A stretch of DNA of 63,461 nt, filler included, from Octopus bimaculoides (taxonomy: Eukaryota): NCBI RefSeq assembly GCF_001194135.2. It is 6 parts of 6 records of this genome, joined end to end, with 100 filler letters (N's around TTAATTAATTAA, not from the genome) between each part and the next. Parts side by side here need not be neighbours in the genome. Positions count along the whole stretch, not along the records: positions 15,202 to 30,310 come from NC_068995.1; 5 more parts are not named here. One strand, given 5' to 3'. How positions within the stretch are numbered: the first letter of the stretch is position 1; the number at the start of each line of letters is the position of its first letter. Of this stretch, positions 9,641 through 30,734 are shown piece by piece. Under the pieces are notes generated by a model. The model searched no databases, was not told the DNA's origin, and saw only the letters and a list, made by a program, of their open reading frames with translations. A program made the position numbers and the translations under genes.

Positions 9641-10315
9641 TGAATTACAGACAATTGTACGTTTACTCCTTAATGCAAAGTTACTCCATATAAATTCCTT
9701 TTATCTATGACTGACATTTGTGAATTACACTTCTATCAAGCGTCCTTTTCTCATAATCGCAATATAGCTATATGTTCGAACCTTCTAATGTACATGACTA
9801 TTAACCGAGGTTAACTAACCTAAAATATAAACGTAAAGAAAAATATTGGCCCCTCCCCCATATTTCATTATAAAATATACCATTTCATCATGATCATGTT
9901 TATAATGTGGCATAATAAATGCATTTTCATGTTTGATATATGCAAGTTAGATGCTATACAAAGGATGACTCCTACTCGTGTTTATATATTGTATCTTCTT
10001 TAAAAATATGTTCGTTAAAACATGTCATCGCAGTCATTTCATTTAATCCCCTTACATCTCGTTATCCTTAAATATCACACATACGCGCGCGCACGCATAT
10101 ACATACAAATATATGTATGTGTATATAGTACATATATATATATATATATGTATGCGTGTGTGTATACTTACATACATAGATAGATACATACATACATATA
10201 TATATCATTGCCATATGCCGGGAACCCATCCCAATTTGAAACAAACGTCATAATTCAATTACGCTCTATTCGACTCATCTAATTTTATCCCGAGAAAATT
10301 GCAAAATTTGTCATG

Positions 10316-10351
<36 letters not shown>

Positions 10352-12726
10352 GATCTATCTATCTATCTATCAGTCTGTCTGTCTGTCCGTCCGTCCGTCC
10401 GATTGTATGCCTTTGTGTGTGTATATATGTATGTATAAGAGAGAGTGTGTGTGTGTGTGTGTGTGTATTTAGACATGTTTTTGCCTGTTATAGAGATTGT
10501 TTATACAGACACACGCAGCCTCAACACCGTTCCAAGAATAAATGCACCTTTCAAATATTTAAGATATAGGAATGCTGGTGAAAAGTATGAGAGGATAAAT
10601 CGAAAGGAAAGGGGCCCGATTAAAGAACAAACAACGAGTAAATTAAAAAGAACAAGCATAAATGATTAAACTGATATATTTTGATAAAATGTCGACGTAA
10701 TCTGTAGGCTGCTTGACGGCTGCCGTTCTTATTTGTTAGTTCACATGATATATAGCTTTTACACAAACAACAGTTCAGATGTTGAAAACTAACACAGTCA
10801 AATATTTCAATGATATATATCGTGATATATTAGGTTTCTGATCCTCTTTGTCGTCTGGTTTGGAAGACATTACGAAAAAGTGATCCATTGTAAGAAATTA
10901 GTGTAAAAATAGAAACTTCCGGCAAAAGAGAAATTTGTTTTATTGAAACTGAAGGAAAACATTGAAGTCAAGTGAAAGCAATTCATCAAAGAAGGATTTT
11001 TTGTTTAAGGCTGCAATATTATTAAGTCTATAACATCTTATCAGGCAAATCTTCAGGAAATTCTTGATGTTTTCTGCATTATCTTTCGATGAAAGGCAGA
11101 AGTAGATGGAGTGAAAGCAGTTTACTAATCGTTGACGGAAAGAGATTTGATCTGAAATGGTCTCTTTTCAGACAGGTCTTTAGAGTGAAATGTTATTTAA
11201 TTATTTGGCTAAATAGCATAAATAATTAAAAAAAGACTACGTTACAGAAATTTAGGCTGAAATAACGTTATGTAATAAATCTATATCTAAAACAGGAGTT
11301 TATTTGAAGAGTATGCAATGAAAATTTATTGCCACACACCTACTAGAGTTAATTATTTACATTCCATTTTACTTGGTACAATACCTATTTTTTGTAGAAT
11401 AGCAGAATATTTAACTAATTCAATAAATTGCTTGTCAAATACTTAGAAAATTTGATTGCAGCAGTGAAATCTGAACCCCGCAAACTATCGAAATGGCTGC
11501 ATTGCTATAGGTGTTTTACCGCTTCGATCGTCTTCACCACCCGTTTAAGACAACCAAAATCTTCTTCAGTAACAGCAATACACTGTGGTTGTAGCTGTAT
11601 TAGCTATTCTATTCGCGAACAGTATTTTTGAAAATTGGTTAAATCGATTTGAATAAAAAAGAAAGAAGCTACATCGAATGCGGTGATGCTGAATTAAAAT
11701 CTTGCTGAATGGACTGCACCATCCGAACTGAAAAGTATCAGATATATAATGGGGACAATTTTGTTAGTAATACGTTCTCAGTACACATTTGTGACTTTGA
11801 AAATGTGGGACACAGAACTGTAAATTGCAAACTAAGAATAACACAGGATTAAATATGGTAATTCCATAGTTAGATATCTTTATGTATCAAGTTCGAATTC
11901 CAATAAAATCAGCTTTGCCTTTCACCATTCCAGTTTTTATAAAATAAAATACCAGTCAAGCAATGGTGACGATTACGTAGACTGATATATGTCGTAAAAA
12001 ATATGTCATTGTACGTATTCGATCCCAATACGTCAAAGTTGGTTATTGTAACATCAAGAAATTTTCTGTAGTATGTTGCGTTCTCCGAGACCTGCCGTTA
12101 ACAAAATGCTCTCTTAAAACTTGCTCTTATTTATGGTGAGTCTAGATGGAGGAACACAGCTCATGAAGTACATACTTCATGATACTTTTAATGCTCCTTT
12201 AAACTGTTTGCACGTCAATAAGTACTGAAAAGATGTGGGCAGATAGATAATTCTAAAGAGGTGATGTAATTGTTAGTGCGAAGTGATATAACTGTTAGTG
12301 CTAGGTCGCCGGTGGCTAGACTTAACATAGATTATAAGAATAGAAAAGACGAGTGAACTGACAGTGTCTTAAGCAGATGTATGAGATCAGTCGATTGAGA
12401 CGAACTGGAGACATTATTTTAGAGGTAGAAAAGGTTGAGAGATGAGCTAGAACACCGGGAAACCAGAAGGTGGCTGCAAGTGAATTTTAAGACGAGTGGA
12501 TTTTCTCTAGATACGGTCTAAGATATATGCTTTTGTAGAAGCAGTAGTATCTGAAATGAGGACCACTACTCCATTGTAAAACTTATCTGAGTTTCGTGGG
12601 ATCTTAGTAATTATTAGAAGTCGGACAACTTTCTAATCTTGAACAGATCGTACAGTCTTTGGGATGCGATCCTTGCTATGTTAAGGATGTGTTTTTGCTC
12701 GAAAAGATAACTAATGTTTAAACAAG

Positions 12727-14569: not shown

Positions 14570-15755
14570 GTGTGTGTATATATATAATGTATATAAAGTA
14601 TATATGTATACTTATCTAGAAATATGTTCATATGTATTTATACATTTTCAAAAAGGCATAAAGTATTTAAATTCTCGTCTGTGGAATTCTTCGTTAATTA
14701 AATGATGCCAGCTATTGGTAAATAAAACGCGTAAAAGTAAATAGAAAGTAAATAGGAAAATAGTAGTTTAAACTATTCTAAAGAATTTAAAAACCAAACA
14801 TTGTATAATGTACAAGTTTTTCTCTTCGAAGAAATTCTACGCAATTCTATTGTAGCAACGACATAAATTTCAGTATTGATGTTCAAACGATAAATACATA
14901 AATAAATAAAAAATCAAATAAATAAATAGAGAGTATAGTATGAAATAAATAACAAATACAAATAAAAATAGGATAGAACTCACAATATGGACGGTTACAT
15001 TATTATTATTTTGTTGTTTTTTTATATATCAGAACACTATTTGTTAAGCCTTTATATATACATGCATACATACATACATACATACATATATATATATATA
15101 TNNNNNNNNNNNNNNNNNNNNNNNNNNNNNNNNNNNNNNNNNNNNTTAATTAATTAANNNNNNNNNNNNNNNNNNNNNNNNNNNNNNNNNNNNNNNNNNN
15201 NTATATATATATATATATCCCAAACTTAATCCTTACTTTATAGAATGATTCATTCCGACGAGCATTTGTTTGACGAACACACTGAGACACCTATTATTTG
15301 GCGCAAAGCAAGTCAGTGCAGTGCAGACTTTAACGTGGCGACTGGGTGATTCTTTTTATTGTGGCAACACGTGTTGAGGAATGTGATGTCATAATACCAG
15401 TCCAGAAACCGGTCCACCTCAGTTCAAATACTAGAAAATCTATAGCTGGCTTCAATATAGTTATAGTGAATGATTTTCTTGACCCGTATGCTCAAAGACG
15501 GTTGATTTCTGTAGTTATTATCAGTGTTATTTTATCAGCAATTGAAAAAAGAGTTTTGGCTGTTATTTCCAGCAGGTAGACATTCATACTCAGTATATCC
15601 TTTGATTACTATGCATTTTAATCATTCAGCTATTTACTGAGTTTTGGGGCATGCAATCGCCTATATTATTGTTTCTGTTAGGATCAATTGAATTATTTTA
15701 CCCTAAATAACAATATCGTTAACAATTTCTTCGCAAATATTTTCTACTAGTTATT

Positions 15756-15789
<34 letters not shown>

Positions 15790-16112
15790 NNNNNNNNNNN
15801 NNNNNNNNNNNNNNNNNNNNNNNNNNNNNNNNNNNNNNNNNNNNNNNNNNNNNNNNNNNNNNNNNNNNNNNNNNNNNNNNNNNNNNNNNNNNNNNNNNNN
15901 NNNNNNNNNNNNNNNNNNNNNNNNNNNNNNNNNNNNNNNNNNNNNNNNNNNNNNNNNNNNNNNNNNNNNNNNNNNNNNNNNNNNNNNNNNNNNNNNNNNN
16001 NNNNNNNNNNNNNNNNNNNNNNNNNNNNNNNNNNNNNNNNNNNNNNNNNNNNNNNNNNNNNNNNNNNNNNNNNNNNNNNNNNNNNNNNNNNNNNNNNNNN
16101 NNNNNNNNNNNN

Positions 16113-16189
<77 letters not shown>

Positions 16190-16234
16190 GCATATATATG
16201 CATATATATACATATATATAAATATATGCATATA

Positions 16235-16861
16235 TACGAGGTGTGAGTAAAAGTTTTTCGGCACTTTTATTGTCATTATTGTCAACCTGTTCTGTGCAAG
16301 CGTGCATATTGTTGGTACTATTGTGGGCATATGATCGAATTTTGAGCCTTATCGCGCTACCTTTCCTTTTGGCTTTACAGTGTAAGCACGCCCGCTCCGC
16401 TAGCAATGCCAAAGAAGAATAAAGAGCAGTTAACCTAGAGATGGTAATGGCGAAACGGATCACCATTATCATATCTCAAGCTAGCTGAATATTCTCGCCA
16501 GTGGTGGAGGACGATGGGCGTCCTACTCCCTCTCTGAGCGTCACGCTTTACGGCCACTCTTACACTCCCCGACCACTCATTCACACTTCTTCACGGTAAT
16601 GCTCTGTCCCCATATTTTGCGAAATGCCGCCGATGAATTTGAACTTCTGACACACCTTCTGACCAGAGAAAACGGATCACTGCTCTTTGCTCTCCTTTGG
16701 TGCATACTGCTAGTGGAAAAATGGCGTGATCATGTACAGACTTCGATCACGTGACCACAATACTATACCAGCTATTTGTATGCATGCGCAAAAAGCACTG
16801 TGTTAATAATAAAGGTATGTTATGTCGAAAGTGCGGGTAATTTTTTACTTTCCGTCCTGTA
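16235..16861 (-). mobile_element. Internally deleted mariner element
   Basis: Minus strand ~16500-16710 encodes CTK.EQRAVIRFLWSEGVSEVQIHRR..YGD, a mariner N-terminal HTH. The ends are TA-flanked and loosely inverted (..GTAAAA..GCACTTT). Confidence 0.75.
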
Positions 16862-16890
16862 TAAATACACATATGCTAGTGTATATATAT

Positions 16891-16926
<36 letters not shown>

Positions 16927-17204
16927 GTGTGTGTGTGTGCGTGTGTGTGTAAATGAGTGAGTGTGAGTGTGTGCATGGGCTCGCGTAATTATATATCACA
17001 TTTCCGAAAATTATATTACTCGTTACAGAGTATTTTATTTTGACAAGAATTTGATGCTTCGTGATACTGCATTTTGCACCATTGTGATAAGTTAGTAAAC
17101 AAAACGTATATCTCTACCCACATGATCTGTATCTATTTCTTTTCTCATTATTTGATTACATTGCCAATTTTTGCCTTTTGAATTTAACAGTTGGCTATAG
17201 TCTT

Positions 17205-17395
17205 CTAGCGAAATGCTTAGCGATATTTCGTCTGTCTTTATGTTCTGAGTTCAAATTCCGCTGAGGTCCACTTTGCCTTTCATCCTTACGGGGTCGATAA
17301 ATTAAGTACCAGCTGCGTACTAGGGTTGCTCTGATCGACTGCCCCCCCTCCTCCTCAAACATTTCGGGCCTTTCGCTTAGAGTAGAAAAGGTAAT
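17205..17395 (+). mobile_element. SINE family B copy upstream of CR copy 1
   Basis: GAGTTCAAATTCCGCTGAGGTCCACTTTGCCTTTCATCCTTACGGGGTCGATAAATTAAGTACC. Confidence 0.85.
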
Positions 17396-18285
17396 GTAAT
17401 AAGGTCCCCACATGACAACTATTTCACAAGGACACAGATTCATCGGTATGAAATATTTTCATAAATGTATTTTATTGCGATTGAATGTTGTAATTATTTT
17501 CCTGTTGTTTTGATATTCCTACACGTTTAATCTTGTCCTATGATTGCAACCATATCCAGGTTTTGGTTTTCACGTTCTCTCACAAATATAGAGAGTTAAT
17601 ATGTTTTCAAACTTTGCTCTATATAACATGATTTAAAATATAACTGCTTTGTTTTAGGATTCCGATTGACCACCATTATTCTACAGTCATATCCAAGTTT
17701 GTCAGAATATCCACCTGTTCTGTTATGAAGAAGACCTTTTTACTGTTTCACACAAATCTGGCCAACGAAATAGACGGAATTATAACGATACATGTATAAG
17801 GGATCTCCACATAACTTTTGAAAGAAAACACTGATAAGTATTTTACCAAGAATATTGAAAGGAATACGTAACATGCAGTGCCGAATAGATGTACATGACT
17901 GCGCAATCTGAAGGTTATTCCAAATACTGATTTTACTTTCACAAGTAATTAAGTCGACAGCAAGAGTAATTATCATCATTCTTGTCAACATTTTATATCA
18001 TTCAATAGACAACACGACATACCGAGATGAATATTGAGAACATTTTTCGTATTTAAGAGAGTGTTGTCTCCGTTGTATTTTAAAACTATCATGTGATCTC
18101 TTAGTAATCTGCAGTAATTTTTTGTTTTTGCGAACAACGTGAATGGTACTGATTTAAGTAAAATAAAAGAAAAAAGATCTCATAGTTAAGTAAAATAAGC
18201 TACAAAACCATCAAATTGTCATTGATAAAAGCAAAATAAAGAGTAATTGACTGAGATTTAACTTACAAAACTATTACACATAAAT

Positions 18286-19497
18286 ATGTTGATTCTGTAT
18301 CTTGCTCTAATCGTGACAACATGTGTATTCGTTGTGAACTGTGAGCCGAGATACAAAGATGAAGAGAGATTGCAACTTGACATCTTATCTACCTACAACA
18401 AACATATAAGACCTGACATTAATGTAACTGCATCAGTAGATGTATATGCAAGCTTATATCTTGATATACTCTATGATTTGGATTTTGTAAACAACATCCT
18501 TACGGCTCGGTACTGGATTCAACTGAAATGGACGCATGAAATGCTGAGATGGAATCCATTAAACTATAAAAATATTTCGCGTACCTACCTACGTAAAGAT
18601 ATGATATGGATTCCATCTATTACAATGTGCAACACAATGAAACAATCAGAAGATAAAGACAATCCTTCCGAAGTATCTGTGTATTTTAATGGATCTATAG
18701 AAATTAGTTTAATTAAATTATTGCACACCTACTGTGAAATAAATGCTTACACATTCCCTTTCGATGAACATACATGCAATGTATCCATGTGTGTCTCATT
18801 GCAAGAACTTCACCATGCGAAAAGGACGAAACTTACTTATAAATCGAGACAAGCGAAACACTCTAAATGGGATATCAAATTTTCTGGTGGGACAAATGGT
18901 ACAAACTATTATCACTACAGTTACGTAGATGCTACTATGTACCTACGGCGTAAATGCAATGTAGGTGTCATAGCTATGCTGATTCCGACAATAATGCTGA
19001 CTATTTTAACTGCCTTTATTTTTCTTCTACCTCCTGAATCGGGTGAAAAAGTTACTCTAGCAACGACAATATTTTTATCAAATATCTTGTACCTTGCACA
19101 AATTGAGAAAAACCCACTGATAAATTCAAAAAAGCCCTCGCTTCTTGTTTTATATATAATGGTATTATCATTGTTATGTGGTATCGCTTCAATTGGTTCG
19201 GTGATTATAAGCAAGTTGTATGTAAACCAGTCATCTGATAACAACAAAGTGAAGGCGTCGCATCAAAGTAACATCACCTCACGCGTTAATCAAATTGCAG
19301 ATATTTCAATTATACCTAAGGAAGAATCCAATCCTGTACTCAAAAAGGACATGTCAGGAAAAGGATTCAGAAAATGCATTTTCCATTATAGCCGACTTGA
19401 TGACATATTTCTAAAATTTACCATTGCAAACTTAACTGTATTTTCAATAGTATTCATTTATTTATTGTATATGGCAGAGAAAGTTTCTTCCTTTTAA
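18286..19497 (+). CDS. Cephalopod chemotactile-receptor-like Cys-loop ligand-gated ion channel subunit (divergent nAChR-like), intact, 403 aa, CR copy 1
   Basis: Signal peptide, YNKHIRP, IWIPSI, Cys-loop C150-x13-C164 containing FPFD, M1-M2 LPPESGEKV, four TM segments and a short M3-M4 loop. No loop-C vicinal cysteines and no introns in the CDS. Confidence 0.93.
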   Translation: MLILYLALIVTTCVFVVNCEPRYKDEERLQLDILSTYNKHIRPDINVTASVDVYASLYLDILYDLDFVNNILTARYWIQLKWTHEMLRWNPLNYKNISRTYLRKDMIWIPSITMCNTMKQSEDKDNPSEVSVYFNGSIEISLIKLLHTYCEINAYTFPFDEHTCNVSMCVSLQELHHAKRTKLTYKSRQAKHSKWDIKFSGGTNGTNYYHYSYVDATMYLRRKCNVGVIAMLIPTIMLTILTAFIFLLPPESGEKVTLATTIFLSNILYLAQIEKNPLINSKKPSLLVLYIMVLSLLCGIASIGSVIISKLYVNQSSDNNKVKASHQSNITSRVNQIADISIIPKEESNPVLKKDMSGKGFRKCIFHYSRLDDIFLKFTIANLTVFSIVFIYLLYMAEKVSSF

Positions 19498-20014
19498 CGT
19501 ACAAGGACAAACTGTATTTTTTGTAAGAAATTGTGTCTACTATCCGTGTCAGACACAAATATGTAGAATCTTTACTTTATATGAAGAACCCAATATTAAA
19601 AGTATATGTCTGGATTTGTCACCTTTAAAATGGTTAATTCAGATACAGACAAATCAATGATACTATAAAAGGAACATTGGAAAAGTTTCCGTTCTACTAT
19701 GCTCATTCTAGGATCTTGTTGATGATAGACATTCACATGAAAACTTCTACACAAATACACAGTATAATAACTGCGAAAATTATGACGTAGATGGTAGAAT
19801 TGAGGATGTGTATATCTATGTACATCTACATAATAAAACGCACATATAAACTCAAACACACATGTATGTGTATATATAAATATATATATATACATATGTG
19901 TGTGTGTGCATACAAGCATATAAAATGACTAGTTTAAATTCGGATATACTGCATTTGTACAGTGCAATATTTAAGGCATGAGAAGTTATGTACATTATTT
20001 ATATTATTTACATT

Positions 20015-20075
20015 TGACGGATATTAATCATCGTTTCGGCTGATATACCCTCCAAGCCTTCATCAGGTGTCTTGG
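20015..20075 (-). ncRNA. Hammerhead ribozyme-like core in the Penelope terminal region (probably degenerate)
   Basis: Minus strand reads GACAC-CTGATGA-a-GGCT..AGCC-GAAAC. The catalytic boxes are at 20066-20060 and 20037-20033 with a helix II between them. Helix I/III pairing is not convincing in this copy. Confidence 0.55.
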
Positions 20076-20169
20076 GGAAATTTCGAACCTGGGTCCTCAT
20101 TACAAAAGTTTTTTTCGATGTTGTTATTATTATTATTATTATCATTATTGGTATTAGTATTATTATTCA

Positions 20170-20241
20170 GGTCACTGCCTGAAATCGAAATCGGAATCTT
20201 GGGGTTAGCAGCCCGCGCTCTTAACCACTATGCCACATGCC
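20170..20241 (-). ncRNA. tRNA-like unit (Pol III A/B boxes) in the Penelope terminal region
   Basis: TGGCATAGTGGTTAAGAGC (A box), CT-GCT-AA anticodon-like loop, GATTTCGATTTC (imperfect B box). No good acceptor stem. Confidence 0.55.
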
Positions 20242-23200
20242 TGTGGGCAATTATGGAGTGAATTTTTACGGCTTATATATCTAGCATTTTCCTATCCTTC
20301 CTTAATACCTGTTTCCATATGCTATTCGTATCTGCACTCTGTCTGCTTATGAGGTTGTTGTGTCCTAGTATATATGCTGCTTCTTTTAGTTTTCGTATTT
20401 TCCACTGGTGTTCTCTGTCTATTATTTTAAGCTCACCCCACAGGGAAAGGTGGTCTCCATTTTTCCATACATGATCAGCTATACCCGATTCATCAACATC
20501 ACGTGTCAGAGCTTTGCGATTTTCCTCCACCCTTATTTTGTGGGGGATGGCATGTTTCGCCTTTATATAACCTACAACAGCTGCATGGGATGGAGTACAC
20601 GCGGTTTTGGGTCATATTGTTTTCTATTGGTAATTTTACCTCCAGGAGATATTTTTGAAGTGTTGTATTACTCTTGAATACTGTCCTGATGTCATGTGGG
20701 CCGCATCTCAACACTACTGTAAACTACCACACAGGTACGGTCTCCCTAAAATTTACAAGGATAGTATTCCATTAAGAACTATGAGCTGTCAAGGTTCAGC
20801 ATGTCATCTACTGAGCTGCTTCTTTGTGAAATATAATCAGTCCATTTGCATGGAAGTCCAAATCATTCGTGAAGAATTCCAACCAATTCACAGAATTGAT
20901 CAAGGACACCCCCATTGAATCCAACCAGATGGTGAGCTTAGATGTGATAAATCTGTTCGCCAAAGTCCCAACTGGTAAAGCGCTATCGGTGATTCAAGAA
21001 AATCTAGTGACAGACACCCATCTAAAAGAACGGTCTAGTATTCCAATAAGAAACTTGATGGACATGGTTACTTTCCGTGTAGAAACTACCTACTTCAGTA
21101 TAGACACTGATATATATCGACAAGACCAGTGTTTAGCGATGGGTACGCCATTATCACCGATAATAGCCAATATATACATGGAATACTTTGAGAATATCGC
21201 TTTAGGATAAACACCAATAAAGCCAACCCTATGGCTGCGATATGTTGATGACACCTTTATAGTCTGGCCCCAACAGGAATATGTCGATGTACTGTTAGAT
21301 CATGTGAACTCAATAAAGCCATCCATACAGTTCACAATGGAAAAAGGAAAAAAGACAATCAGCTAGCATTCCTGGACGTATGAATAACACGCACCAAGTA
21401 TAGATTCAGGATATCTGTATACTGCAAACTGACCTTCACTGATCGATACCTTAACTTCAATTCCCACCATCCATGCAGTGTGAAGACAAGGATTGCTCAC
21501 TGACTAAAACATCAAGCAAAAAATATAAGCAGCGATCGTGATACCCACCATGAAGAAATGATCAAGCTCAGTAACCATCTATTAAGCAACAACTGTCCAC
21601 AAAACATACTATCTACTACAATTATGTAGAAAAGAGAGGATGAAACCAATAAACGGTCTACAGTCTGTCTAAGCTATGTAAAAGGCCTCTCCGAAAGATA
21701 CAAAAGATATCCGACCCATATGACATCAGGAGAGTATTGAAGAGTAACACAACACTTCGCAAATATCTCCTGGGAGTAAAAGTACCAATAGAAGAGAAGA
21801 TGACTCAAAACTATGGGTACTCCATCCCATGCAGCTGTGGTAGGTTATACAAAGGTGTAACATGTCACCCCCCACAAAATAAGGGTAGGGGAACATCGCA
21901 AAACTGTGACACGAGGTGATATTGATAAACCGGGTATAGCTGATCATGTATGGAAAAATGGAGACCACCTCCCACTGTGGGATGAAGTTAAAATAATAGA
22001 CAGAGAACTCCACTGGAAAATACGAAAACTAAAAGAAGCAGCACATATGCTAGGGCACAACAACCTCCTAAGCAGATAGAGTGCACATATGAGTAGCTTA
22101 TGGGAACCGGTATTAAGGAAGGATAGGAAAATATTAGATTTATAAGCCCTAAAATTTCACTCCATAATTGCCCACGGGCATATGNNNNNNNNNNNNNNNN
22201 NNNNNNNNNNNNNNNNNNNNNNNNNNNNNNNNNNNNNNNNNNNNNNNNNNNNNNNNNNNNNNNNNNNNNNNNNNNNNNNNNNNNNNNNNNNNNNNNNNNN
22301 NNNNNNNNNNNNNNNNNNNNNNNNNNNNNNNNNNNNNNNNNNNNNNNNNNNNNNNNNNNNNNNNNNNNNNNNNNNNNNNNNNNNNNNNNNNNNNNNNNNN
22401 NNNNNNNNNNNNNNNNNNNNNNNNNNNNNNNNNNNNNNNNNNNNNNNNNNNNNNNNNNNNNNNNNNNNNNNNNNNNNNNNNNNNNNNNNNNNNNNNNNNN
22501 NNNNNNNNNNNNNNNNNNNNNNNNNNNNNNNNNNNNNNNNNNNNNNNNNNNNNNNNNNNNNNNNNNNNNNNNNNNNNNNNNNNNNNNNNNNNNNNNNNNN
22601 NNNNNNNNNNNNNNNNNNNNNNNNNNNNNATATATATATATATATATATAGGATATCTAACGACTAAATTTTCATTGGAGTGTATTTCATTGTTTTCCAC
22701 CGTAATATCCAAGATACAAATAAGAAAGCTTACATAATCTCTCATTTTCGTTTTGTATAATAACACGAAATTTTATATTTATATGTCTTCAAGATAACGT
22801 TTAACTATATTTTAGCTTGTAAGTAATTATACTTTAAAGTCCATGCATGGATAGGCATTCCAAAGTTGTAAAGATTCATAGGCATAAAATACTTACATGA
22901 AACCATTCTATTATTTTTGAGTGATGTCATTGTTTTCTGATTTTGTTTTACAGTCTTCGGCGTTTAATTAAGCTCTCCCATAATTACCGTATTTTTTTTT
23001 CTTCGCACAATTTTTACAGAGAATTATTTTTTGTACAAATTTTGATCTGCCTAACATTATCTAGCAAATACCTTGTTTCTTTTAGGCTGCCAATTCATCT
23101 GTTTACAGTCAAGTGAAAGTTTGATACACTATACACAAGATCATTTTACTGTTTCATGCGGATATCATCACCGAAGTAATCGATACAAAGCATCCAATAC

Positions 23201-23669
23201 CTACCAATTTTGAGGTATACCTTCGTATATATTAAAAAAGGACGCCTTTTAATATGTCACCACGAACACTGGACGAGATGTATAACGTGCAATGCTGATT
23301 AGATGTTTATGACTGCGGCACCAGAAAGTTCTGTTCAAATTCTGATCTTAATTTCCAACTAATAGCATTAGTATGGTAATCCGTCTATACTTTTAAGTGG
23401 AAAAGAATGAGTGGCGGCACATATTTGTGTACTTATTTTGTATTTACANNNNNNNNNNATTTTTCTATTTTATTATTAAACTATAATGTGCATGTTAGTA
23501 ATCAGTCGTAATATTTTTGTTAACAACAAAAATGACACGCGTTCAAGAAAAAATTGATATCTGATAATTAAGTAAAATAAGGTAAATTCTTTCAAATATT
23601 CTTAATGATAAAATATAAAAGAAATTGTAATTTGCATAGATATTCCTTACAGAATAATTATACATAAAA

Positions 23670-24854
23670 ATGTTTGTCCAGTACCTCGTTCTGCTTCTGA
23701 CTACATTTCTGTCGTTAGTAAATACTGACCCACTGTACAAAGATGAGTTAAGGCTGAAAGACAAATTATTATCTAATTATGCGCATCATATCTGACCTAT
23801 CATTAATTTAACTGCGTCGGTCGATATAAAAGCAGAATTATGCCTTGAAGTACTCTATGAATTGGACTTTGTAAACAGTATACTTTCGGCTCGGTATTGG
23901 ATTAAACTGCAGTGGACTGATGAATTGTTGAGATGGAATCCATTAAACTATAATAATATGACACGTATGTATCTACCTAAAAATAAGATATGGATCCCGT
24001 CTATTACAATATTTAACTCAAGAACAGAATCAAAATATAAATATAGTTATCAAGATGTAACTGTGTATTCTAAAGGATCTGTGGAAATGGTGTCAATCAG
24101 ATTTCTGCATACCGATTGTCAAATAGAAGCCTACATTTATCCTTTTGATCTACAGACATGTTATATTTTTCTGGGTATACCAACATATAAACCTCAAGAT
24201 ACAAAAATAAAAGAAATTCTTTGCGGTAAAGAAAATGATACTACCAACTATCAATGGGATATCACATTGTATTGTAACGTAGATAGCGCGAACAAACACT
24301 ACAACTACGTAGATGTTACGATGTACTTATATCGTAAATTGAATGCAGGTATCATCGCTATGTTGATTCCAACAATGACGATAACTATTTTGACTATCTT
24401 CGTTTTCGTTCTACCACCAGAATCTGGTGAGAAAGTTTCTTTAGGTACGACGTTGTTTTTATCAAATATTTTGTACCTTGTAGAAGTCGAGAAGACCATA
24501 CCGAAAAATTCAAAAAGACTCTCGCTTTTTGTTTTATATTTAATGGTATTATCATTGCTAAGTGGTATCGCTACAATTGGTTCGGTAGTTATAAGCAAGT
24601 TATATGTAAAGCAGTCGTCTGATAATATCAAATTGAACACATCGCATCAAACAAACATGTCGTCACGCATTAACCAAATTGCAGATATTTCAATAGTATC
24701 TAAGGAAGAATCGAATCCTGTACATAAAAAGGACATGCCAGGAAAAAAAATGAAAAAATATACTTTCCATTACAACCGAGTTGATGACATATGTCTAAAA
24801 TTTATCATTATAATATCGGCATTAGTTTCAATTACCTTTATTTGTCTTTCATAA
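23670..24854 (+). pseudogene. CR copy 2: full-length Cys-loop receptor frame (394 codons) with a single in-frame TGA at codon 42 (23793-23795); pseudogene, null allele or recoded gene
   Basis: ATG 23670 starts MFVQYLVLLLTTFLSLVNTDPLYKDELRL..YAHHI*PIIN, in frame with ORF 23862..24854. Cys-loop C-x13-C, LPPESGEKV and four TMs are present, colinear with copy 1. Confidence 0.85.
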
Positions 24855-24999
24855 TTTTAAAATTATAATATTATCCATCATTCTTTCTCGAAAATCACAT
24901 CTAATACTCTAGTAATTGACAGATGTGTAGGAATATTCAGACTTTAATTCCCACGAGGTCCCCAAAATTGATAATATATATTCAGAGTTGTTAAATATA

Positions 25000-26112
25000 A
25001 CACATTTGAAATGCTTAATTTAAATACTCACTGATATACAAATAATAAAGAAAGTTTGAAAGTTAATTTATCATCCACTATTAACAAACATATGACCTGT
25101 CATTAATCTAATTGCATCGATCAGTATATATATATATATATATAAATGCAGAAATATGACTCGAAATACGCTTTGGTGTGGGTTTTGCAGTTTTGTAAGT
25201 AACACACCAGTAGCAAGGCATGAGACTGGATTGCATTGGAATGATGATCTGCTGAAATGGAAGCAATTAATCCATAATAACATTGCACCTAACTTTGCAT
25301 CTAAAAATAAGATACAGAGCCCATCAGTTCAATGTGTAATACAATCAAAGAATTAGAACATATAGTTCTCTCTAAGTCATTCCTGTTTACAATGGATCGG
25401 TGGAAATGTCGTTCATTAAATTACTAAATACCTATTATCAAGCGAATGTTAATATTTTCCCCATTTGAATCAGAGATGTGAGAAATTGCTCTGTGTTCTT
25501 TCCCATAAACATCTCCACGGAGATGTAAAAGAGGAGTTTTGAAATTATGCCAATTGCACATGAAACTATCAATTGTCTATCTACTTTATTAATGTGGAGG
25601 TTAGCCAAACCAACAACAAGAGCTAAGCAAGCGCTCTGATTTACTTACAATGTAAATTCCATGAGGGCGACATACGTGTGCTGATTTGAGCAATAATGAT
25701 GACCGTTTGAATCTTTTCAAGCAGAGGAGAAAACGTCTAGATCAACTACAACATTTTTATCAGAAGTCCTGTACATTTTATTAATTGAGAAAAGCTCACA
25801 GAGTAATTGAAAGCCAGCTTTGACTCTTATTTTATATTAAATGATATTAATTGTCAAGTGGTATCGCTGTACTTAGTTTGGTGGTTAAACGCAATTGTGT
25901 GTTAGTCAGTTACCTGCTCATATCCAATCTAGCTTGCCACAGCAAAGTAGAATCATGTTTCGTAGATATTTCAATGATTCCTCAGGAGCAATCGGGTCAT
26001 GTAATCCATGGGGATATGCCAGGTAAAAAGAATAATAAAACGTATCTTCTATTGCAGTTGATTTGATGTCATATATCTAATATTTATTGAAGTTACATCA
26101 ACAGTAATTTAG
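25000..26112 (+). pseudogene. CR copy 3, heavily decayed pseudogene
   Basis: Fragments align to copies 1 and 2: LHWNDDLLKW, PSV/MCNTIK, YNGSVEMSFIKLLNTY, GEN..TTFLSEVLYILLIEKS, SSGIAVLSLVV and DISMIPQEQSGHVIHGDMPGKK. It carries many frameshifts and stops and a (TA)n insertion at ~25125-25143. Confidence 0.85.
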
Positions 26113-27286
26113 ATAGAAATTTTTTTTACTACTTCTGACAGGACACAAACATTCCTTCTTTTAAGTACAAAACCACTCTAATAATTCTCAGATATACAGA
26201 AATATTTAATCTTTGCTTGACATGTGGTTGCCAATATTAACAATATATGTCTAGCCTGTGTCACATTACACATTGGAAATGCTTAGCTTAAATTCTGGCA
26301 GTATATTGCCAACGGTATGGGGCATACATTGAAGAAAAATTCTGCCCATTCGACTTCGTTCAATCTACATTCTTGTTTATAATTAAATTTTGCTATGCAA
26401 GCCTGTATGAAAAACGAAGCACATATGCCGTGTCAAAACGTCTCTTAACAGGCCACGGATCAATACGAATACAAGCGCGCGCACACGTAGACATATACAT
26501 ATTGCTACAATGCATATACACAAATGTACGTGATACATAACAATACTACCTGAGTATCCCGTCGTTGTCGGCATATTTCCAGAATAGAATACCATAGTAG
26601 ACTTTCGGAATGACACATTCACATAGGCTGGATATTCTCTAATTTTAGTGGGTCTTTAAAAACCATTTTTTTTTATTCACCACACACTCAGAAATGAAGG
26701 GAGGAAGTTTTTCATGAATGAAAAGTTTTGACAATTCAAGAATCATCTTTCCCCTTTCCGGAGCGATTTTCTTAACTTTTTTTATTGGTACTATGCACTT
26801 AATAATGATATGAGAGGCATTTGCGGTACAATGAAAGGAAAAAAAATGTTTTGAAAGGTTATGAATATTTTAAAACTCCTCTCCTTTATTCAGTATCTAT
26901 TTAAACGTTTGATTTTGTCTTTTTGCACAACACACTTATAACTGATTGAAGCATTCTTGACGATTGAATATCGGCGTCCACCATTATAATACGCACTCCA
27001 TTAATTTTCAAACAGAAAATAAAATGAGATTGAAAAACAGTTACATTTTTTATAATTTTTCATAAACCCCGCTCCTCATAAATCCTAAAATTTTGGGTTT
27101 TACGAAAGTGTTTTTCAGCAATACATTTAAAATACGAACAATCTGAATCTGCAATTTGATTTTGTATATAATTTTAAGATACTTTCGTTTTTGTATGTGG
27201 TTTGCAAGATTCTTTATGTGAATTTGTTTGCGAAGTATATTTTATTGTGTCTGGGAGAAGTCATTCTCTTATAGTGCCTTATTAAT

Positions 27287-27427
27287 TTAACCCACTCACT
27301 GGTCTGAATTACACTGGTTTACTTATTTTATTTCACTAAAATTTTCGTTGCCTTTTCAATAGTCGTTGAATATTTTAGTAAAAAATAATAAGTAAATCAA
27401 TGGAAATATGACCGCTGAGTGTGTTAA
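27287..27427. mobile_element. piggyBac-like MITE
   Basis: TTAA at both ends; imperfect TIRs TTAACCCACTCACTGGTC / rc TTAACACACTCAGCGGTC. Confidence 0.7.
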
Positions 27428-27879
27428 ATTAATAATGCACTTTAAGGTAATTATCAGACGGAAAATTGTGTCATTTAAGGGAGATTTAGATGTTGTTTCT
27501 AGTACGTCCAAGAAAAAGACTCTGCCCTTGTTCTAAAATGTTATACATTAACCATTATCATGTCTTGTACCATTTCACATCTTAACGGATGGATTATGTA
27601 CTCGTCGACTTTCTATGGAAGCGGCGTGTTTCAAAGATTAAGTGTTCTGTTTGTTGTAATCACTCGCTAATTGAAGGACTTGGATGTCACGTGTGATAAT
27701 GCGTAATCATGTACTTTAGCAGAAACGCAACTAACGTGTCTTTGACAACAAGAACGAGGAGTTGCCATTTGAGAGAGACTCTCATTTCCCTTCCTCATCA
27801 GATTTTTAGTGAGCTGTAGTCGTGCATCATGACGTGACCGGACCAAAATTTGGCAACCGGAGTTTCGTCAAGTACTCTT

Positions 27880-28400
27880 GGCTTTCAGCTAGATGGGTTG
27901 TCCGCGAATAGACTGCAGTTGTTGATGTATGGGTCGGAAGTATTTATTGCCAAGGTTCATAGATAATCTCTAGAAGTCTCTGGTCTAGCAATACGAAAGT
28001 GATTCGTGGTATTGTCAGTAGTAAAGAAACTCTACAGCCAAGTGCTAGAGATTCGTGCAGAGCAAAGAAATTTTGCTGCATGCTTTTGTCGAGAGCCCTA
28101 GACTTACTGAATTGTCACAGCTGTCACATGTTTCACATGTTTCACGGATTCGACTATAAATGGAGTTTGTTTCAAACATTGTCCCACTTCCTCTCAATGA
28201 TCAGAAAGGAGACAGTATATTTATCATTCTCATTGGCTTTCGCAAACGTAGTTAGGTTCTTGGACGAATTTGAAAGGGTTAACAACAGACGATTTCCACC
28301 TTACATACTAGAAAATTTATTGCGAGTGACAACGATATTCCAAGAGAACAGGCTCGCTCCGAACATAGGCCTTTATATTTATAAAGAAAGATGTGAAGAG
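27880..28400 (+). mobile_element. Possible very old LINE RT remnant
   Basis: Weak motifs only: LDGLSA..LMYGSE, VLSVVKKLYSQVLE.RAEQRNF and VYLSFSLAFANV resemble RT subdomains 0-3. Confidence 0.3.
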
Positions 28401-29229
28401 TTACTTGACCTTAGCTTTGTGTGGTTTTCATGTTTAACCATTATTGTGGAATATCTTTTGCTTGAATTTTGTACTTCTTAGTTTTTGCTTTCTTTCTGTA
28501 CTCTCTTCCATTTATTTGTAAAAATGTAATAACGAATAAAATATTAGAAATAATTATTATTGTTGCTTTTGTTGTTGTTGATTTTGGTTCTGTTCTCAAG
28601 GCGTCGGGTTGGTTTAGTATAGAAAAATATGTCTTGCCCTATTTGTTCCTGCTTTTTAGCACCTAGTACAGCAATACACTTCGTCGCTCAAGCATCGATA
28701 AAATAAAATAACAGTCCAGCTAAGGTACATGCAAACGACTAAGCTCAGTCACTAATATTGCTTGCCTTATACAAGGAAATTTAGAGACACGATGAATGAA
28801 TAATTGTTGTGGAGAATAATTCGTCTTACAACTCTCAGATTATGAAAGATCTGGCTTCTGTTTGGCCAATATATGTATTTGGAACACTGCATTACCTTTC
28901 CTTATAGTGGTGTAGCCAGACAAATTTCCGCCTTCGAATATACTTTTCTATAGTGGCAGAATAATGTTTACAATGATAAATTGACGTTTTTCATGGTGTA
29001 GCTGAGTGTGCGATGTGAACAAACCTTAACATCACGGCTAGTGAATAATGCCAAAAAGCAAAATGTTTGATTAAAAAGGAAGCTGAAGAATTTGTAAAAA
29101 TTGAACCAGGAGACTCAACAACTAAACGTTTTAGAAATATTATTGTCAGTAAAAAGAACATTACGAAAACAACAACAAAATTCTTACTAATATTTTAATT
29201 GCATAATGCAGGAACCTAACACAATCGTG

Positions 29230-30290
29230 GCACGATGGGCAAAACACTTTCCGATCCACGGAAAGTGCTCTGGCAAGGGTGGTGTCGATAATGGTGAGGG
29301 GATATCCACATAGGACGAAGTGGCGAGGCAAGAGTTGAGACTGAGTCTCAAAGTCATGGTTGTCACTGCAGAGCCTGCGTAGGCGGAGGAATTAGGAATA
29401 GGTGATTGAGAGCTTGGTGTATTTAGAGTGGGAAAAGGAGAAGTGTGAGTCTGTGTGTTTGTAGTGGATGGAGGTGGTGAGAGTGGAGTGACTAATGCTG
29501 ACCGAAATGTCGAGAAGGGCGACTAAGGTGTCGGAAATAGTGCAGGAGAGGTGGAGGGCAGGATGGAAAGATTTGACAAAAGAGAGGAAAGAGGCTAGAT
29601 GTTCGTGGGAGAGTGAGGTCGTACCGATACAGTCATCAATATAACGACCGTTTAGTTCAGGAGTGGGAGCAGTGAAACTTGAGAATATTTGGGCCTCAAT
29701 GTAGCCAACGAACAGGTTCGCATAGTCTAGGACTATTTTCGTTCCGATGGCCACTCCCGAGACCTGCTTGCAAAAATCACCTGTAAACGAGAGGACAAGT
29801 TCGGCCAGACGAAGGAATGTGGATAAGTCAGGTTGGGGTTTGGTCGAAGGTCAAGGAAATGTTGGAGTGCACGCAGCCCCTCGTGGTAAGGGATCACCGT
29901 GTATAGAAAGAATCCTGATGTCAAGAGTGATGAGAATTTTAGAGGGGCCAGGTGGGAAAGAGAAAGAGTTGAACAATGAAAGAGCATGGTTGGTGCCATG
30001 GATATGAGAGCGGATAGATGCCAGTAGGGGGCAAGGGCACGATCAAGATTTCAGGAGATGAGTTCGGTGGGACAGTTGTAAGCGGAGACGATGGGGCGGC
30101 CAGGGTTAGATTTGTGGATTTTGGGGAGGAAGTAAAATGTGGAAACTCGAGGGATGCGAACAATGAGGAGTTGGAGGGCAGCAGGCAGTAGAAGGAGGTG
30201 TCTTGAAGTTGACGGAGAGCTACCGCCTTCTAGAGGACTGCACGCCACCCACCACGGCTCCACCATTGTCGGCCGGTTTTATGATGATCA
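29230..30290 (-). mobile_element. Second Penelope-like RT fragment
   Basis: LPKIHKSNPGRPIVSAYNCPTELIS, AIGTK..YANLFVGYIE, RYIDDCIG, LLDISV and HYKHTDSH. Confidence 0.85.
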
Positions 30291-30734
30291 TATATATATA
30301 TATATATATANNNNNNNNNNNNNNNNNNNNNNNNNNNNNNNNNNNNNNNNNNNNTTAATTAATTAANNNNNNNNNNNNNNNNNNNNNNNNNNNNNNNNNN
30401 NNNNNNNNNNTATATATATATATATATATATATATATGTCATGCGAATTTGTTATTTTTTCTTTTTGCCAACATAAAAAAGTGTGTTACTGTCTGGGAGA
30501 TCTTTATGGTAGTAGAAAAGGCATTTCACTCCTATTTCTAAATTTGGTGCGTGGAGAAACAATTAGCTGACCCCTGATTATAATTATGCTCATAATTATA
30601 GAATATTTATATATATATACATACATACATACATATATATATACATATATATATACATATATATATACATATACATATATATATACATATACATATATAT
30701 ATATATATATATACACACATACATACATTATGTG

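Follow-up and report, generated by a model that had tools for sequence, protein, structure and literature searches.

The window analysed here is a stretch of 63,461 nucleotides joined from six parts of the Octopus bimaculoides genome (assembly GCF_001194135.2), one of which, positions 15202-30310, comes from NC_068995.1 and contains three paralogues of a Cys-loop channel on the + strand (all positions are those of the window). The second of these paralogues, copy 2 (23670-24854, +), is a single-exon chemotactile receptor (CR) frame of 394 codons followed by a TAA, which is interrupted only once, by an in-frame TGA at codon 42 (23793-23795, +) in place of the conserved arginine of the HIRP motif. 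Copy 2 is very probably a young pseudogene or a null allele, either fixed or segregating, in a CR cluster shaped by birth and death. We infer both the loss of function and the recency of the stop.

Translation of copy 2 from the ATG at 23670 to the TAA at 24852-24854 yields MFVQYLVLLLTTFLSLVNTDPLYKDELRLKDKLLSNYAHHI*PIINLT..., and the TGA at 23793-23795 is the sole internal stop in the 394-codon translation. In a chance frame of this length, about 30 stops would be expected from the local composition (A 0.35, T 0.33), and the probability of finding one or none is 3e-12; the frame of copy 2 is therefore real and no accident. Both domains of the receptor superfamily are recognized in the translated frame: the Pfam domain Neur_chan_LBD with an E-value of 2e-33 (115.9 bits, cut-off 26), and Neur_chan_memb with an E-value of 1.5e-13 (52 bits, cut-off 28.1). 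Residues 1-393 align with the solved O. bimaculoides receptor CRT1 (PDB 9e6b, E 3e-114), and a second entry, 8eis, was aligned over its full length as well. In the same set of structures, copy 2 scores 8e-40 with squid CRB1 and 8e-32 with the alpha7 nicotinic acetylcholine receptor (nAChR), as against 3e-114 with CRT1. Judged by these alignment scores, the nearest solved or named relatives of copy 2 are CRs, not canonical nAChRs.

The architecture of a complete subunit can be followed through the whole frame. A hydrophobic N-terminus of about 20 residues represents the signal peptide (23670-23729, +), and the mature CRT1 chain in 8eis starts at the residue aligned to position 21. The Cys-loop, C150-x13-C164, spans residues 150-164 (24117-24161, +). 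Among the transmembrane helices (TMs), the core of TM1 (residues 228-246; 24351-24407, +) is placed by hydropathy and by the CRT1 alignment, and the cores of TM3 (residues 286-304; 24525-24581, +) and TM4 (residues 374-392; 24789-24845, +) by hydropathy. The pore-lining helix TM2 (about residues 253-272; 24426-24485, +) lies below the hydropathy threshold and is placed by the CRT1 alignment and the Neur_chan_memb match only. An earlier note on this DNA had described signal peptide, Cys-loop and all TMs as lying in one frame, which is borne out, TM2 by alignment alone. Its central observation, a single TGA at the HIRP arginine of an otherwise intact CR, is likewise confirmed by the translation and by the alignment to copy 1, in which the TGA falls on the arginine of KHIRP. 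Across the database homologues, this column holds arginine in 16 of 17 sequences and lysine in the remaining one; two further models are truncated and lack the residue.

The top match of copy 2 apart from its own record is the O. sinensis protein XP_029646618.2 (P0002), which has 399 residues, an intact frame and 72% identity, and whose signal peptide starts with the same MFVQYLVL as that of copy 2. Its gene lies at 10001-11200 of the O. sinensis locus L001 (from CM016874.1). Positions 22993-25030 of the window match L001 9330-11369 with 83% nucleotide identity; copy 3, the downstream flank and a retroelement remnant upstream of copy 2 match L001 with 85-86% identity and are collinear. Since L001 is collinear with the window over the gene and both flanks, P0002 is the positional orthologue of copy 2. 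Comparison with orthologues had been suggested as a check on the stop, and this one has arginine (AGA) at the site. A search for the O. vulgaris orthologue, limited to the one accessible O. vulgaris locus, did not find it: this locus, L005 (P0020), holds a different paralogue, which is about 52% identical. The homology search turned up no relative closer to O. bimaculoides than O. sinensis.

The ancestral codon was determined from a codon alignment of five genes: copy 2, its O. sinensis orthologue, copy 1, the O. bimaculoides paralogue P0003, and the more distant Logan-assembled relative P0005. Codons 41-43 read ATC TGA CCT in copy 2, ATA AGA CCT in the orthologue, copy 1 and P0003, and TTA AGA CCT in P0005. 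Because all four comparators carry AGA, the ancestral codon was AGA. Relative to the orthologue and all compared paralogues, copy 2 shows a tandem substitution AA>CT at 23792-23793 (+; ATA AGA to ATC TGA): the A>C change at 23792 is synonymous (Ile), and the A>T transversion at 23793 creates the stop. On this alignment, the stop is a derived, tandem AA>CT change specific to the O. bimaculoides lineage. A CpG transition (CGA>TGA), from which the earlier note had derived the stop, is ruled out by the AGA in every comparator: what occurred is an A>T transversion within a tandem change. The wider proposal of the note, in which either a nonsense mutation of recent date has made copy 2 a young pseudogene or null allele or the consensus is in error, is favoured by the evidence; only the CpG route has to be given up.

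The proposed course of events is simple. After the split from the O. sinensis lineage, ATA AGA at codon 42 of copy 2 would have become ATC TGA, and translation would stop after 41 residues, which comprise the signal peptide and 21 further residues. As translation ends there, no receptor subunit would be made from copy 2; in terms of coding capacity, copy 2 has no uninterrupted coding sequence (CDS) that gives a full subunit. Measured against the species branch the lesion would be young, which is why the remainder of the gene still has a functional look. It is highly improbable that the stop is avoided, be it by splicing of a small intron or by initiation downstream of it. Such a bypass is suggested by the sole database record of copy 2, a 339-residue model (P0001) that starts at E56, 3' of the stop and right after ...gcag, a possible acceptor, and by the sequence ttccttacag 11 nt 5' of the ATG of copy 2. 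However, the stop region is collinear and without interruption in every relative, the solved CRT1 among them, and CRs are intronless (PMC11526382). Moreover, an in-frame skip over the stop would cost the protein the RP motif, helix alpha1 and the last part of its signal peptide. Initiation at the next in-frame ATG, codon 97, would give a product that lacks a signal peptide. The sequence ttccttacag (23649-23658), which is kept in O. sinensis (tctttacag, L001 ~9974-9983) but reads ttacaa in copy 1, resembles a 3' splice acceptor and would mean that an intron in the 5' untranslated region precedes the single coding exon.

How old the stop can be is limited by the absence of a second lesion. In the non-coding flanks, p between O. 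bimaculoides and O. sinensis is 0.124, and the 6840 aligned bp contain 44 frameshifting indels; about 4.8% of random substitutions in the frame of copy 2 would make a stop. Along the entire O. bimaculoides branch, a neutral frame of 1185 bp would be expected to collect about 3.8 stops and about 3.8 frameshifts. The clean remainder of copy 2 places the age of the stop below about 39% of the species branch (95% level), and a stop with an age of 9% of the branch would have a 50% chance of being found in a clean frame. Because this age bound is only about 39% of the branch, an "otherwise intact" frame is the usual appearance of a young pseudogene and no evidence for recoding. The emphasis that the earlier note put on the intact frame is justified insofar as copy 2 contains no second lesion; as evidence the intactness is weak and does no more than cap the age of the stop. 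Given the divergence and the indel rates here, a pseudogene younger than roughly a third of the species branch would be expected to show just one lesion, and a single stop in an otherwise perfect frame should not be taken as a sign of recoding.

With respect to selection, the pairwise comparison of copy 2 with its orthologue gives a dN/dS of 0.74 overall and 0.86 downstream of the stop. These values were considered as a signal of decay and rejected as such, since assignment of the changes to branches puts the excess on the O. sinensis branch and not on the branch that bears the stop: with three outgroups, 48 nonsynonymous and 29 synonymous changes fall on the O. bimaculoides branch, compared to 63 and 14 on the O. 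sinensis branch (Fisher p = 0.011). In our own maximum likelihood (ML) analysis under a codon model (F3x4 frequencies, five taxa), omega of the O. bimaculoides branch is 0.55-0.62 and thus comparable to the family background of 0.62-0.69 (p = 0.73). For codons 43-394, parsimony gives an omega of 0.50 on this branch (bootstrap confidence interval 0.31-0.83). Only one unique departure of copy 2 is found at otherwise invariant columns of the family (F375C), and intact members range from 0 to 8. Copy 2 seems to have evolved under normal constraint along most of the branch, and the selection results fit a recent hit at the end of that period. The ML omega of copy 2 on the O. sinensis branch is about 1.5 and exceeds that of the family background (p = 0.0085); for the gene in O. 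sinensis, which is still intact, this would mean either positive selection or relaxed constraint.

Several points weigh against a recent loss of function. Omega of the O. bimaculoides branch is not significantly below 1 (ML, p = 0.10), and since ML cannot reject an omega of 1 on this branch, the argument for recency has limited power. Conversely, a dN/dS below 1 downstream of the stop and the retention of conserved residues are equally expected of a functional, recoded gene. The base call itself is that of a single gapped short-read assembly made from one animal. Exact look-ups of the full-length protein with R42 or W42, of the downstream open reading frames (ORFs) of 330 and 298 residues and of the 41-residue peptide gave no match, and a search for contigs encoding the 339-residue model found none, a result that is uninformative because the collections are without a second O. 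bimaculoides assembly; copy 1, though intact, is likewise recorded on the reference chromosome only. Finally, the base following the TGA is a C (23796), and in yeast no stop tetranucleotide is leakier than UGA-C (PMC4748822). When UGA is read by near-cognate tRNAs, Arg, Trp or Cys can be incorporated (PMC4150775), and unprogrammed readthrough may yield full-length protein in trace amounts, part of it with the wild-type sequence.

The origin of the base call leads to the possibility of a consensus or assembly error, or of a somatic or rare-haplotype call, in which case the true germline sequence would be ATA AGA and the gene intact; we regard this as improbable. The O. bimaculoides assembly was obtained by Hi-C scaffolding of an earlier shotgun assembly (PMC9068888), and runs of 10, 323 and 445 N are present within the piece. 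The shortest of these gaps (23449-23458, no strand) marks a gapped short-read contig 212 bp 5' of the ATG and 335 bp 5' of the TGA, and the functional look of the remainder of copy 2 is also what an error would leave behind. Against an error stands that 23792 and 23793 both differ from every relative: because two adjacent bases differ, a double miscall in unique, non-repetitive coding sequence would be needed. Furthermore, the stop site is not at a contig end, and substitution errors are rare in a high-coverage short-read consensus. Real nonsense alleles, on the other hand, are common in chemoreceptor families (PMC11526382). With regard to the gaps, (TA)n, (TC)n and (TG)n microsatellites at 15758-16236, 16890-16973 and 22185-22629 adjoin the 323-nt and 445-nt N runs, which fits the picture of cephalopod genomes as rich in AT microsatellites that break short-read assemblies.

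If the stop is real, copy 2 could still give a functional CR, conditional or at low dose, by programmed readthrough or by A-to-I editing (UGA to UGI, read as Trp), which appears very unlikely. In its most specific form, this explanation holds that a real and fixed UGA is decoded usefully in sucker sensory cells, by near-cognate readthrough with Arg or by ADAR-mediated conversion to UGG, and that copy 2 is deliberately a low-dose or conditional CR subunit; we consider this form just as doubtful. It can draw on the UGA-C context and on the frame past the TGA, which is intact and has a dN/dS of about 0.5, and, as the coding part is intronless, exon-junction-dependent decay would presumably not clear the mRNA. 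However, any stop below the age bound given above would be expected to leave the frame intact. A conserved TGA, which had been named as a mark of recoding, is not what the comparison reveals: the stop is not conserved, as the O. sinensis orthologue reads AGA.

As to readthrough in particular, the human high-readthrough motif is UGA CUA(G), and even LDHB reaches only about 1.6% (PMC4359377). The context in copy 2 is UGA CCU AUC, with CU instead of UA at positions +5/+6. The 100 nt 3' of the stop fold worse than shuffled sequences (z = +1.22), i.e., no readthrough-stimulating RNA structure was detected there. Copy 2 has the UGA followed by C in common with the UGA CUA G readthrough genes (LDHB, MDH1, AQP4) and with the alphaviruses, in which UGA-C is combined with a 3' structure, but it differs from them in its CU at +5/+6 and in the lack of a downstream structure. 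These systems use a conserved natural terminator followed by a conserved extension, whereas the stop of copy 2 is internal (codon 42) and absent from the orthologue.

Editing has a broader background: coleoids edit their mRNA heavily and can fix mutations that are masked by editing (PMC6881472), and stop-bearing fungal genes are rescued by editing (PMC4817773, PMC10776026). The PUK1-like 'pseudogenes' of Fusarium and the harm-permitting editing of coleoids resemble copy 2 in combining an in-frame stop in a conserved frame with active mRNA editing. The difference lies in what an edit would achieve. The coleoid harm-permitting model is based on G-to-A substitutions that are reversed by editing (PMC6881472), and in the Fusarium and coleoid cases, which are UAG>UGG or G-to-A, the ancestral residue is restored; the change in copy 2 is A>T at position 1 of AGA and irreversible by editing. 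Since the mutated base is at position 1 and position 3 was already A ancestrally, editing cannot restore the arginine. The conversion TGA>TGG would give a non-ancestral Trp, which is present in none of the 17 relatives (an R/K column). In addition, the target A at 23795 has a 5' G neighbour, the one that ADARs disfavour most, and a local duplex as substrate was not detected: a 201-nt stretch around the site is no more stable when folded than shuffled sequences (z = -0.28; local pairing only).

A third way of decoding the codon would be as selenocysteine, for which UGA is the codon. This reading is effectively refuted. At the homologous position, relatives have Arg or Lys and in no case Cys or selenocysteine, and a permissive scan of 23400-25400 (E<=1, both strands), which includes about 550 nt of 3' flank, revealed neither a selenocysteine insertion sequence (SECIS) nor any other Rfam family. 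Selenoproteins are not known among the Cys-loop receptors. For the recoding alternative raised in the earlier note, none of the testable marks (stop conservation, SECIS, RNA structure, sequence motif, restored residue) was found.

Interpreted as a young pseudogene or null allele, copy 2 would represent one event in the turnover that is normal for tandem chemoreceptor clusters, and its neighbours illustrate other stages of the same process. Chemoreceptor families are rich in pseudogenes and follow a birth-and-death pattern; the CRs evolve fast and have no introns (PMC11526382). Of the two neighbours, copy 1 (18286-19497, +) has kept an intact frame of 403 residues, with AGA at the homologous codon. 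Its O. sinensis counterpart (L001 1045-1503, corresponding to window 19035-19497) comprises only the last 153 codons (251-403; 82% amino acid identity), and the sequence 5' of this remnant is unrelated and contains no N gap. From this alignment, copy 1 appears to be truncated or lost in O. sinensis while it is intact in O. bimaculoides. The cluster accordingly displays differential loss: copy 1 is apparently truncated or lost in O. sinensis, copy 2 is disabled in O. bimaculoides, and copy 3 is a dead gene in either species.

Copy 3 (~25056-26085, +) is an old, heavily degraded paralogue, which was recovered as tblastn fragments in three frames and has an equally degraded, collinear counterpart in O. 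sinensis. The damage that had been described at its homologous codon is indeed seen: a 2-nt deletion, CATAT--GACCT, at 25089-25098 (+), where the site reads CATATGACCT, and which is identical in O. sinensis copy 3. Since O. sinensis copy 3 carries it too, the deletion must be older than the species split, and the stop in copy 2 arose independently of it. A TGA common to copies 2 and 3 is rejected on these grounds; the earlier note had regarded the matter as undecidable from this sequence, and it is settled by O. sinensis, in which copy 2 reads AGA and the copy 3 deletion is already present. A TGA farther along in copy 3 (26059-26061) stands opposite the CGA of copies 1 and 2, in agreement with the earlier note; it is also found in O. 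sinensis and is one old lesion among many. The AA>CT change of copy 2 (23792-23793) and the deletion of copy 3 (25089-25098; L001 ~11511-11520) affect the same AA of the paralogous CATATAAGACCT. This double damage to one dinucleotide, separate in time, may reflect coincidence, a mutational hotspot or a repair event.

Among known systems, the octopus CRs, which are derived from nicotinic receptors (CRT1, PDB 8EIS/9E6B), are like copy 2 in their pair of domains, the Cys-loop, a single-exon CDS, tandem clustering and a high family-wide dN/dS. Unlike CRT1, to which it is about 51% identical, copy 2 has a premature stop at codon 42 and cannot encode a subunit as it stands. A close parallel is provided by the chemoreceptor pseudogenes and null alleles of vertebrates (OR, T2R, V1R) and insects (GR, OR): as in copy 2, a single point mutation disables an intact tandem paralogue, the orthologue in a related species is intact, and neighbours are lost differentially, with no substantive difference between the two. 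Pseudogenes and stop codons are not mentioned in two preprints on the CR family, and copy 2 would be an example of such a pseudogene or null allele in this family. For annotation, the locus should be recorded as an O. bimaculoides CR pseudogene or null allele with an intact O. sinensis orthologue, XP_029646618.2. Beyond annotation the significance is small, and the three-copy cluster offers a clear small case of birth-and-death turnover among CRs.

Some further features surround the cluster. The retroelement remnant between copies 1 and 2 (20234-22184) has inverted arms at 20234-20709 and 21706-22184, which are 84-89% complementary, and an ORF at 20869-21210 with a weak reverse-transcriptase match (RVT_1, E 9e-4, below the cut-off). 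As this block is collinear in O. sinensis, the insertion is old. At the far end of the piece, 28700-30310 is set apart by a GC content of up to 0.41-0.50, a GC skew of +0.29 to +0.42, and overlapping ORFs on both strands, one of which (29392-29754, -) has a YIDD box typical of reverse transcriptases and no Pfam match. Collinearity with O. sinensis stops at 29249, and the region may be a species-specific insertion. Outside the window, the O. bimaculoides paralogue P0003 (L002 1935-2000; CM046615.1, ~37.95 Mb) is annotated as a protein of 374 residues that begins at an internal Met. The public model of this gene probably lacks some codons at the 5' end, as a normal signal peptide (MTFVQYFVLILTTFLSVVNCDP) is obtained from an ATG that lies in frame 22 codons farther upstream.

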